This document shows, piece after piece, positions 19,227 through 30,161 of a DNA stretch of 64,000 bases. Each line of letters begins with the position of its first letter. The stretch's first letter is position 1. Where the stretch lies: positions 7,440,001 through 7,504,000 of the forward strand of contig OZ116702.1 of assembly GCA_964199315.1 (NCBI GenBank). Reading direction: 5' to 3'. This stretch comes from Orbicella franksi. Taxonomy: Eukaryota. The translations under genes and the position numbers were made by a program. The notes beneath the pieces were generated by a model, which was not told the DNA's origin, did no database searches, and saw nothing but the letters and a program-made list of their open reading frames with translations.

Positions 19227-20861
19227 GGTGGCTCTATATAGTTTTTTTGGCGCGCGAGGCATGGGTGCGAATGGCGCGAGCGCGCGAGTATTTAAAAGAA
19301 AAGTAAAAAACAAAAATAAACATGGCGGCGAGACTTTTATCGCGAGTCGCGTTCCACTTACCGCTATCCTTTTTGACCAGAACAAGTGTTCATCAAAAAA
19401 CGCCTAGAAATGTGTTTAAAAAAACACTTCTTTCGTGTTCTTCTGACGTGGTTAAACTGAGAAGCCAATTCGCAGCAGTTATCGCGCCGACATCAGAGAG
19501 AGAGAGAACAGTCGTGATCGTACGCGAAGGAAGTCACAGAGTGGTCACGGTGTACTTTTTATGGTCGGAGGCTTCGCTTTGCGTTCCCTGGGCGATGAAA
19601 CACCGAAAACAGCTGAAGAGTCTGCAAAGGCGCAACTGACATCGGAAACAAAACCACCATTGCGTGACGAGAAGGGTCGGTTCTCAAGAAAGAAACCCGC
19701 TCAAAGTGGAAACACGCACGACAGGACTCGTGGGATAAAGGAGTGGAGGGCAAAGAGGAGTTTCAAGGAATGGTCGAAGATTGGTCCCCACCGAAGAAAA
19801 GAGAAACCCGTTTAAATCAGGTGTGGTTTAAATCTTGTTTTCGCTATACGTGGCACCAAGCAATTCCCTAAAAGTTTTAAGACAAGTGCTTCATCAAGAC
19901 TTTCTTTGCTCTGAAATAGTTCTCAATTTGAACTTTTGTATTATACCATAGGTAGCTTATAGCAAATCGTCAACATAATTATACCTGAACATTCTGACAT
20001 TTCATTTTAAAATTCCAACATTTTTTGTTACAGTTACAACCTAATAATTACCATTAAAATGTATAAGTTTTAAATTTTTATCAGGAAAAAACAAAGAAGG
20101 AAAATTGCATTCTACATGGAAGTAGAATTATGGACTTGGATGTTTTGAGAAGTTCATTGAAATGTTGTCAACACTGTAAAGCAGGTGAGAAGAAACATTT
20201 TTCTGCCTAAAGAAAATCAACACTAAAGAAAAGTCAAAATGAATTCTCAGTTTTATGGCAAGTACACACAGCTTTAAGGCTATAAAATTAACAGGTTTCG
20301 AAAAAAGAATTATGAGGTTGATAATACATGTATATCTTAAATACATTACAAAACGTCTCATATGCAATCAGCCATAAAAAGCCTCGGGTTGGTCCTTAAA
20401 TTTTTGGGCAAGTTCCCTATAACAAGCGTCACACAATTGTTTGTCTATTGCGAGCAACAAAAATGTTTTTGATAAATTTGGAACAAACAAGCAGTTGTAA
20501 ATTTGCCACAGACCACAAATTGCATTCACTGCATTTTGAAATGTTGTTGGTTTTTGCAAAAATTTACTTGTGCTCGTTTATTCCAAATTAAAGGAGACAA
20601 CACACTGCCAGAATAAAGTATCAGATCTTCCTGAGTATCAATATATTCACTTTATTTTCAGCCAATTTGCCATTGTGGAACATAACAGCAGAAAAAAAAT
20701 GTGGGTTAGCCTCAGTGTTCTCAGTTACCTGTGCAGTGTGTGGTACAGAGAATGTTGTCAAGACCTCCAATGAACACAGGAGCGGTCAAAGAGGTCCAAT
20801 CAGTCAGGATGTTAATTCAAGAGCTGTTCTTGGGTGTCTACATACAGGAATCGGTGAAACC

Positions 20862-27279: not shown

Positions 27280-30161
27280 AACGCATTTCCATAAGTATTA
27301 CAACACTTATTAGGTATACTTTTCGCCGTCGTGGGAAAAATAAGCCTCTACATCTCGACTAATTTTCAACTAGCACGTGCGAAGGAAGCGAAACGTGAGC
27401 ATGCGCAGTACCGTAACTTGAAGAATTTCTATTTTGATGACGTCACGAAAATACAGGGGTCTTTGGGTGATCTAAAACGCATATTAAGGTTACAGTATAC
27501 CTTCGGGCCGGCAATTTTCTTCAAATTTGGATTTTTGGGTCAAAATAGTGGTCGAAGAATAATCTCTAATTTCTGAAAAAAATTTTTGAAAAAGGCTAAG
27601 TATTGGCGGAGAAATGGCGGTTTTACGTTTTCACCGGAAGCAAAAGTTTACCTCTTGATTGACAGCCCTATAGCGCGTATGCAATCAACCGAGGCGATTT
27701 TCGCGGGAATTACCTATATGGATGTCACGAATTGACTACTCAGTTGATCAGCATTGTTGTTCTGACTACCCAGCATCTTTGGTATAAGGCGTGTCTCTAT
27801 TAAGTTATAAGTAAACATAGACCACGTTTAAACCATGGACCAGTTCGAAAAAGCGAAAACAGCGAAGAACGAATGAAAATACATCAATGAGTGAAGAAGC
27901 GAAAGTTCGCCACGCGGATGAAGCTATAGTTATCGTATAAGGCGGGCAAATATTCGTGGTAAGAGAAAAGAAAGGTTCTGTAAAAATTTCGGAACTTGAC
28001 AGCAATAACAGGGATGCTGAAAGAGACTCTTCTGATGAGTCCGATATCGACGAATCGTCGGACTCATTGAGACCATTTGAAATATTATCCATGCACAGTT
28101 GCCCACACACAGTTGCTCTTCGCGCTTTCTTTTGTTTGTTTCCTTCGCTCAGCCACTCTAGCGTTCGTATCCTTTTTAGTCTTCTCTATTTTGCCAGACC
28201 AGCTTCAAGAAAAACCGAGCTACAGAAAAATTATCTCTCTGCCTTCGGTTCCTTGAGCGCATTGCGAAACACAAGAGTTTTTTAGAGATTCGCGCGTAAA
28301 TTTCACCAGGAGGTTAACGGTAGTAAACTTTCCCTGCACTGATTGGCTTAGTTATCTGAGAACCCAGTTGAAGGCGTTTGTGGGCGGAGTTTGTTTGTGA
28401 AGCAGAAAATTTTTCTTAGCGCTGTTTTCTCGAATAAATTTTTTCACTTGAAGCAGACACTTTAAAGAGTTATAGCTCAAAGGGAATTTGTTCAATTGCT
28501 CATTTGGACAGTGGCTAGTTTAACATATAAACTACAAAAGCGTGTCTGGGAATTGTTAATTTCGAAATACTTTTTCTTCGAGAGCGATTTTTGTACGATC
28601 ACTCCACATTTTTTTAATCTTGTTTCGAAAATGTTCTGTAATTTTTTACTGCAATTGAATATGCCAAAACGCAGACACGTTTTTTAAGCGCTTTGCGCCC
28701 TGAAACCGAGGAAAAAATTAAATTGGCGAAAAACGAAATTCGCTTTGACTTGTAGCTTTCGAAAGGTGATTCGGGCGCTCGCATTTAGTGGTCGTGAAAA
28801 ATTCGACAATTCATTTTCTTTATAAATTCTTGGTATAGTTTGATAGCCAGCCCCATAAGCTTTAATTTGATACAGGGGTTTAGGTATCTACAGCTTAAAC
28901 TGCACGCGCTACATCGCTTGCGCGCGAGACACCCCTGAAGGTATACTGTAACCTTAAGCGCGTTCCAGACGGTGAATTTTTTTGAAAATTCGCACATGGA
29001 TAGGATTTTTCTTGTTCTCGCTGTTAAGCAAAAATCATCAAATTTTATACATACATTAATGTAATATGCGTAAAAAACGAAAATTGCGAATTCCTCTGAA
29101 AATTATGTACAGATTTTCTTGTAGCTTTGTCAGTTGAAACTCCTTGTGTGTTAACTGTGTTTCCCCCAAAACAAAGAAAATTCACCGTGTAGAAACCTAG
29201 AAACACCGTCTAGAAGTCAGGCAGGTTAAAAAAACAAGCCAAGCATTTCTATCAGTAGTTGCCATAGCAACAACATTTAGGTTCTGAAAGTGTCTTCAAT
29301 ACGTAGCCTAAGGCTGTAGGTTTTTTATTATTGACCTTCTACCGAGTGCTATGTTGTAAACATTTACCAAGGGAGAAATTACTTATGCATATTTAATATC
29401 CAAAGCTTTGTGAAATACTATATAGAGCCACCTTAAAGATCACAATGTTCGTCTTCTCTCTGGCTCTGATTGCGTATTATAACACTCAACGCGAAGCACG
29501 TCACTCCCAAAAGCTTAGCGAAACCTAATTTGATTGTCAAGCGAAATATGAGAAGACTGACTATAAATTTTCCGAAATTTAGCTCAGTTGCGGTCAAAGT
29601 TACCAACTATCTTGAGTTCGTCGGAACACAAGCAAAAGGAATATTAATTAACCACAGGGGATTTAAAAGACACCCGAAAGACCGCTCGCGCTCTCGAAGA
29701 AAAATCACTCGTAACAAACAAATAAACGAAAGACTACCAACTATAGTACAAAATATGAGAGAACTCTCCGCTACGTGCACTTTTTCAGTTCAGTGACTCA
29801 TATAAATTGAAGTGGCTTTCGACAAGAATTGGAGTGTACATGTCATGGATATTTTACATTCATTCAAGTCTTTCAGCAAGGCTCCTGAATCTTCACGGTT
29901 CAAGAGATTTCCAACATAAATATAAACGTGACGAAAACCTGATGAAGGCATAGTTATATCGGTATATGAACAATGTAGTTACGTCATACTTTATCTTATA
30001 TAAGCACGTTAGCCTGGGCACTCTTGATTACTTTATTAATCCTTTGTAACTACCTTCTTAAAGAACTACGTCCATTTGGTCAGGATCTACATTCTTAAAA
30101 ACGGCTACTGACCAAGAAATTTATCAACATCTCAGCTTCGGGTTAGTCGACGCACAGGGAA

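Follow-up and report, generated by a model that had tools for sequence, protein, structure and literature searches.

A dead Kolobok transposon of Orbicella franksi, very probably of the KolobokD lineage, and the kinship of its exonuclease module with Plex9 and PML

The window analysed here is a stretch of 64,000 nucleotides from Orbicella franksi (contig OZ116702.1, positions 7,440,001 to 7,504,000 of the forward strand), which contains a transposon at positions 19227–29432. This element is very probably a dead copy from the KolobokD lineage of Kolobok transposons, the intact members of which encode one protein, a DDE transposase fused to a DEDDh 3'-5' exonuclease. The closest solved relative of the exonuclease module is zebrafish Plex9.1. 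As a transposon the element is a well-resolved but ordinary example of KolobokD, and the possible link of its exonuclease to PML is of higher interest; this kinship with PML/Plex9 may be the potentially new point.

The limits of the element are given by a perfect pair of 16-bp inverted ends, which are flanked on the outside by two copies of the tetranucleotide TTAA:

19223..19226, no strand: left TTAA target-site duplication
19227..19242, plus strand: 5' terminal inverted repeat (TIR), GGTGGCTCTATATAGT, the first 8 nt of which are common to the relative L003 described below
29417..29432, minus strand: 3' TIR
29433..29436, no strand: right TTAA target-site duplication

The 20-nt pattern made of TTAA and the TIR has two exact occurrences in the window, against none expected (100 shuffles). 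Joined directly to each other, the two flanks form a sequence with three continuous matches in the window, all of them paralogous and intergenic and all with a single TTAA:

about 6503–7004: empty paralogous site 1, 92% identity
16024–16264: empty paralogous site 2, 94% identity
34775–35207: empty paralogous site 3, 85% identity

Because each of the three empty sites keeps one TTAA, the insertion, its limits and the target-site duplication are demonstrated directly. The re-analysis recovered the same positions as the first-pass annotation, which had fixed the boundaries from the TIRs, the TTAA duplication and the empty sites.

The evidence for a single fused protein comes from other copies. 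A copy of 4.74 kb, at 6878–11619 of an 89-kb ENA contig (L001), has the same TIR and TTAA and is 88–91% identical to the window copy. It contains neither of the two elements nested in the window copy and keeps 460 bp that the latter has lost, and is itself decayed. Its open reading frame (ORF) at 9558–10088 unites the transposase tail, the linker and the Exo I motif in one and the same frame. Contigs of the same species, taken from public runs labelled coral metagenome (two RNA and two DNA libraries) and aligned to 25376–27480, differ from the window in length at three points: they lack one base at 25872, carry 20 extra bases after 26117 and lack 10 bases at 26570. The three points coincide exactly with the frameshift sites of the window, and at 25529/25533 the contigs run on into sequence missing from it. 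When the differences of one real contig are applied (run X9, record 26; 21 substitutions, 1.1% over 1.9 kb), the frame stays open for 575 codons, beginning at 25555 and ending with the stop at 27279. It covers the zinc finger and the E motif, then the linker, Exo I–III and PML_C; this frame reproduces an observed contig and involves no designed repair.

A complete and apparently intact relative of 4078 bp is found at 151–4228 of a JGI metagenome contig (L003), with TTAA on both sides and a perfect TIR of 21 bp beginning with GGTGGCTC. Its one ORF of 865 amino acids (P0326) comprises the transposase, the exonuclease and PML_C, and starts at a point matching 20667 of the window, as opposed to the start near 19560 proposed earlier. 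Other fusions of transposase and exonuclease, uninterrupted or annotated, are P0109 (913 amino acids, metagenomic) and those of Actinia tenebrosa, Ptychodera flava, Amphiura filiformis, Sycon ciliatum, several bivalves and sawflies, with at least six animal phyla represented. Terminal inverted repeats were not found in the contig of P0109 (L002), which is therefore probably incomplete. Intact members are about 4–4.7 kb long and encode one transposase-exonuclease protein. The ancestral fused protein supposed by the first-pass annotation is thus borne out by the ORF of L001, the 575-codon frame of the contig, the ORF of L003 and the fusions of at least six phyla. The continuous ORF that it expected is present over 25555–27279 in the same-species contig and as the ORF of 865 amino acids in L003, and both L001 and L003 have the TTAA and TIR ends.

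The window copy itself is dead and unable to make a transposase, because both catalytic aspartates are gone and the coding sequence has suffered three frameshifts and two nested insertions. A Pfam search of the window found three pieces of PF20700 ("Mutator-like transposase"), then the exonuclease (Exu_RNase_H_like) and then PML_C. The PF20700 pieces span model positions 29–88, 87–139 and 298–357, so that positions 139–298 are missing. The following parts can be recognized:

19561..19815, plus strand: upstream ORF of 84 amino acids, open in L001 too, without a Pfam match
20658..20861, plus strand: N-terminal piece of the transposase (PF20700 positions 29–88, CxxC region), cut after ...GIGET by the insertion of a long terminal repeat (LTR) retrotransposon
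25376..25529, plus strand: transposase piece, PF20700 positions 87–139
25533..25872, plus strand: Cys/His finger and catalytic-E motif of the transposase (CFTYSV...HSFGDHKNCNESWC; NSQRNEALNS), with E at 25846
25874..26117, plus strand: C-terminal tail of the transposase, with a basic KRRR patch
26121..26570, plus strand: linker motif EG.TY..G.GL and first half of the exonuclease, with Exo I (YDIET) at 26331–26345
26584..27279, plus strand: second half of the exonuclease with Exo II (GHNSQVFD, D at 26662) and Exo III (H 26866, D 26881), the SAM-like PML_C at 27064–27255, and the stop

The upstream ORF could be a 5' exon or leader; it does not really resemble the small ORF that lies upstream in L003. 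Relative to other copies, about 460 bp are deleted at 25529/25533, and with them the first catalytic aspartate (D1), the CCHC finger, the second catalytic aspartate (D2) and DxxH, a loss that had escaped the first-pass annotation. Downstream, the coding frame shifts near 25873, 26120 and 26600: there is one surplus base at 25872, a deletion of 20 bp after 26117, which separates the frames of the transposase tail and the linker, and an insertion of 10 bp at 26570, all three frameshifts being private to the window copy, as is the deletion at 25529/25533. The linker AKEGNTYQSGIGLNLDP is read in the frame of the 26214 ORF (position mod 3 = 0), and no stop codon interrupts the interval. Of the continuity from transposase through linker to exonuclease that had been described, the part from the linker onwards thus stands, whereas the passage from the transposase tail to the linker is broken here by a frameshift. 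All DEDDh residues are kept (D 26334, E 26340, D 26662, H 26866 and D 26881), in agreement with the earlier description of the exonuclease.

The intact protein contains, from the N- to the C-terminus, a zinc-binding region, the DDE core, a basic linker, the DEDDh 3'-5' exonuclease and the SAM-like PML_C. In the DDE core the order of motifs is SYD.GW, the CCHC finger, GD.DSTT, DxxH, the Cys/His finger and SQ.NES.N. The linker is partly disordered and has a conserved EG.TY motif. The residues of the DDE and DEDDh centers are conserved over 16–21 diverse members, with the D, E, D, H and D of the exonuclease invariant both in the set of 16 and in that of 21. The predicted structure has a pLDDT of 91.8 for the exonuclease module and of 82.5 for the whole protein, the model of which shows two globular halves connected by a linker of low confidence (477–504). 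The domain search and the structure model, both proposed by the first-pass annotation, find a transposase, an exonuclease and PML_C in a two-part fusion.

Comparison with known folds gives Plex9.1 as the best match to the exonuclease half (Z 23.3, root-mean-square deviation 2.1 Å, 32% identity), followed by the EXO and SAM domains of Exuperantia (Z 23.0, model residues 535–858) and TREX1 (Z 19.5), while the transposase half matches ISCth4, a transposase of the IS256 family (Z 11.5). There is also a match to the Cas1:Cas2-DEDDh complex (PDB code 8FYC, Z 13.8). Exuperantia from Drosophila (PDB code 5L80) has the same two-domain order, an EXO-like domain followed by a SAM-like domain, but its DEDD catalytic residues are lost (PMC13659232), whereas the module of the transposon keeps all of them.

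According to the survey by Kojima and Bao (2022, Mob DNA, PMC9587614), Kolobok elements are defined by TTAA duplications, RR...YY termini and a DDE core with C/DxxH, in contrast to piggyBac, the termini of which begin with CC. Nearly all Kolobok lineages have a Cys/His finger before the E, and a few, including KolobokD, have a CCHC finger following D1 (PMC9587614). The name KolobokD is given there to the lineage encoding a DEDDh exonuclease, with records from mollusks, arthropods and cnidarians in a survey called not extensive; the exonuclease is described as similar to Exuperantia, TREX and ERI1, with a proposed role in 3'-end degradation of DNA intermediates.

The features found here correspond to this description. 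The 4-bp TTAA duplication is seen in the window, the empty sites, L001 and L003, and the GG...CC termini in the window, L001 and L003. The family alignment contains SYD.GW, GD.DSTT, SD..H.K (the DxxH motif) and SQ.NES.N; the window copy keeps the E motif only, because D1, D2 and DxxH were deleted. Both fingers of KolobokD are present in the alignment, the CCHC finger as K.CR.C ... H.C and the Cys/His finger as KCF.Y ... PH.FG.H..C ... WC, and the exonuclease is recognized by the Pfam matches, the invariant D, E, D, H and D and the fold matches. A motif search found Kolobok_1_ADi_1p from Acropora digitifera (PMC9587614, Data S5), in which NSQRNE(S/A)LNS and the surrounding core match; this core aligns colinearly with those of L001, P0027 and P0047 and closely resembles them. 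The earlier call of a Kolobok element holds on the strength of the TTAA, the GG/CC ends, the DxxH core, both zinc fingers and the likeness to this protein.

The likeness to KolobokD and to the Repbase family Kolobok-1_ADi extends over the TTAA, the RR...YY termini, the DxxH DDE core, both fingers, the DEDDh (DnaQ-like) exonuclease and the cnidarian host. The window element belongs to a family separate from Kolobok-1_ADi, its core being roughly half identical, by eye, to that of Kolobok_1_ADi_1p. An exonuclease-bearing Kolobok had thus already been published as KolobokD (PMC9587614), and the novelty suggested earlier has to be given up: the kind being known, the element of the window is a new family member and not a new kind. 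KolobokD is described there in one paragraph, and the PML_C or SAM-like domain, PML and Plex9 do not occur in the text examined. Beyond the published host range, the fusions are found here also in a sponge, an echinoderm and a hemichordate. Two comparable arrangements are described in PMC9587614, KolobokE with a PD-(D/E)xK nuclease and KolobokH with a RecQ helicase after the transposase. They have in common with KolobokD a DNA-processing enzyme fused downstream of a Kolobok transposase, and differ from it in the fold and chemistry of this enzyme.

Two other readings of the element as a whole have to be weighed. That it is a Mutator-like element (MULE) or a piggyBac-like element is scarcely credible. 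The Pfam family is named "Mutator-like transposase", the fold resembles that of an IS256-family transposase and TTAA is the target of piggyBac too. The target-site duplication of MULEs is typically 8–11 bp, unlike the 4-bp TTAA found here, which rules out a MULE; the Pfam label is misleading. An element of the piggyBac type, which would have CCC...GGG termini and a DDD transposase domain, is ruled out by the GG...CC termini and by the Pfam search, which finds PF20700 and no piggyBac domain, and a close relative stands within the published Kolobok alignment. It is likewise highly improbable that two separate genes are involved, or a host "PML-like" exonuclease gene next to transposase debris, as might be concluded from the different frames of the window pieces and from the short exonuclease-only ORFs that form the majority of the database matches. 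Both parts lie within one TIR/TTAA pair in the window, L001 and L003, the frame changes of the window are private indels, and uninterrupted ORFs of 865 and 913 amino acids exist. Several of the exonuclease-only matches begin with the linker motif of the transposon, which marks them as fragments of fusions.

Many exonuclease-only proteins of the databases (P0016, P0152, P0157 and others) start with the EG.TY linker motif. Since they open with a motif of the transposon, these entries are fragments of fused ORFs and not stand-alone genes, and annotated invertebrate genomes may on their account seem to contain more host "PML-like" genes than they do.

Several points weigh against the assignment of 19227–29432 to KolobokD and to a family with one fused protein. 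The label KolobokD was not found in the supplements of PMC9587614, where families are named Kolobok_N_species, and the assignment draws on the text of the paper together with shared features. The resemblance to Kolobok_1_ADi_1p was assessed visually and with a motif search, with no score. There is no in-frame ATG in the window or in L001 at the place where the ORF of L003 starts. The relative orientation of the two modelled halves is uncertain (pTM 0.50), the presence of contigs in RNA libraries is no proof of transcription, and the activity and role of the exonuclease are only inferred.

For the relationship to PML, a profile of the exonuclease module of the transposon was searched against solved structures and proteins. 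It matched structures of the Plex9 type with E values of 1e-45 to 1e-50 (Plex9.1 at about 1e-47), as compared with 2e-20 for Exu, 2e-13 for TREX2 and near 1e-10 for TREX1. Vertebrate "PML-like" proteins of paddlefish, eel, sharks and rays matched it at 1e-48 to 1e-52. The module has the DEDDh residues, its closest match in both sequence and fold is Plex9, and it carries PML_C, as does the C-terminal exonuclease of Plex9/PML. As judged by sequence comparison, the PML/Plex9 module and that of the transposon are clearly homologous. Plex9.1 (PDB codes 9MRC and 9MRD), the chains 9L8B and 9L85 and the C-terminal domain of fish PML-I (PMC10123124) have the DEDDh fold and PML_C in common with it. The vertebrate Plex9/PML-I modules differ in that they either stand alone or are joined to the TRIM/RBCC portion of PML, with no transposase and no TIRs.

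Two trees of the exonuclease were calculated, a quick one with 143 rows and a careful one with 64 rows, both of them unrooted and with no outgroup. The vertebrate proteins form a clade with support 100/99, and its sister group (99/91) includes P0186 and P0312, two transposase-exonuclease fusions of bivalves; the two together lie among other fusion-bearing clades. The transposases of P0186 and P0312 nest within those of other bivalve KolobokD elements (91/94). In the transposase tree, which was rooted on one long-branched relative free of the exonuclease, the base is not resolved. According to the papers on PML and Plex9 (including PMC10123124), PML arose in jawed vertebrates and is reported from these only, whereas versions of the module borne by transposons range from sponges to hemichordates.

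It is a possibility, still a doubtful one, that the DEDDh and SAM-like (PML_C) module of Plex9/PML-I exon 9 in jawed vertebrates was taken from a KolobokD transposon. The unrooted trees count against such a domestication, as does the lack of a linker relic: no EG.TY motif was found upstream of Exo I in the vertebrate PML-like proteins examined, and capture may have taken the opposite direction. No link between PML/Plex9 and Kolobok was found in the literature of the library searched, although one may exist outside it, and the PML/Plex9 papers searched make no mention of transposase, Mutator or Kolobok.

With regard to mechanism, the transposase would act on the inverted ends beginning with GGTGGCTC, and its DDE core would move the element by cut-and-paste; the element inserts at TTAA and duplicates it. 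The tethered 3'-5' exonuclease may trim, at the transposition complex, the 3' ends that arise in excision or integration, and this is the function that is preferred here, tentatively. A possible analogy is offered by the CRISPR "trimmer-integrase" Cas1:Cas2-DEDDh, in which a DEDDh exonuclease is physically joined to a DNA integrase and trims 3' overhangs ahead of integration. This system is prokaryotic and its integrase is unrelated; the comparison is one of analogy only.

As the main alternative, the exonuclease might work outside the chemistry of transposition and, in the manner of TREX1 or Plex9, break down DNA that is free and either single-stranded or nicked; this appears rather unlikely. 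Its substrates could then be by-products of the excised element or the cDNA of retroelements, and its effect the avoidance of DNA sensing or the suppression of competing retroelements. Plex9.1, the closest solved relative, was crystallized with single-stranded DNA (9MRD), and LINE-1 retrotransposition is restricted by Plex9, gar PML and TREX1 (PMC10123124). The window copy was itself hit by an LTR retrotransposon, but this says no more than that the genome has active retroelements. On the other hand, members of at least six phyla have the exonuclease joined covalently to their transposase, an arrangement that fits action at the transposition complex better than a diffusible clean-up.

Two further elements are nested in the window copy:

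20862..25370, plus strand: Ty3/gypsy-type LTR retrotransposon, with LTRs at 20862–21000 and 25232–25370
27488..28953, no strand: second nested element, non-coding, with TTAA at 27484–27487 and 28954–28957

The LTR retrotransposon is young. Its LTRs are 139 bp long and 100% identical, it is flanked by a 5-bp AAACC duplication at 20857–20861 and 25371–25375, and it has an open gag-pol ORF of 1343 amino acids (21141–25172). It divides the transposase between ...GIGET and HLNN..., and the excision of 20862–25375 advised earlier was right, removing the element together with the second AAACC copy. The second nested element, of 1.47 kb, was missed by the first-pass annotation. It has 20-bp inverted ends, the start of which is given as GGTTACAGTATACC... 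/ GGTTACAG... / GGTTACAGTATACCTTC..., and is probably a non-autonomous miniature inverted-repeat element of the Kolobok type, from a different family. It is not in the L001 copy, where the homologous empty site reads TTGG.

The transposon is placed between tandem carboxylesterase genes, about 730 bp upstream of the ORF at 30162–31292. At least six such genes (PF00135) lie in tandem at 1–53000 of the window, in duplicated units of several kb that are 74–94% identical. On the minus strand, an ORF of 269 amino acids at 61727–62536 has a weak match to the LicD family (E 5.5e-5).

Other combinations of these domains were met in the databases. P0066, a protein of 507 amino acids from an ENA contig of 1.2 Mb, combines an Ets DNA-binding domain with the same DEDDh/PML_C module, perhaps as a host fusion or as a domesticated form. 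Two more proteins contain the module in fusions: in P0232 from Homarus americanus it is accompanied by glutathione S-transferase domains, and in P0183 from Amphiura filiformis (1509 amino acids) a Kolobok transposase is followed by C2H2 zinc fingers.

For KolobokD, a lineage with one paragraph of literature, the present element adds exact ends and proof of the target from empty sites, and the lineage further gains an intact reference of 4078 bp with an ORF of 865 amino acids, a full domain plan and a wider range of hosts. The PML/Plex9 papers leave unexplained the origin of the exonuclease domain of PML exon 9 and of the Plex9 genes. The nearest relatives of this module found here are borne by transposons, and an origin by domestication is therefore directly testable. 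If it were true, PML would owe one of its parts to the domestication of a transposon's exonuclease.

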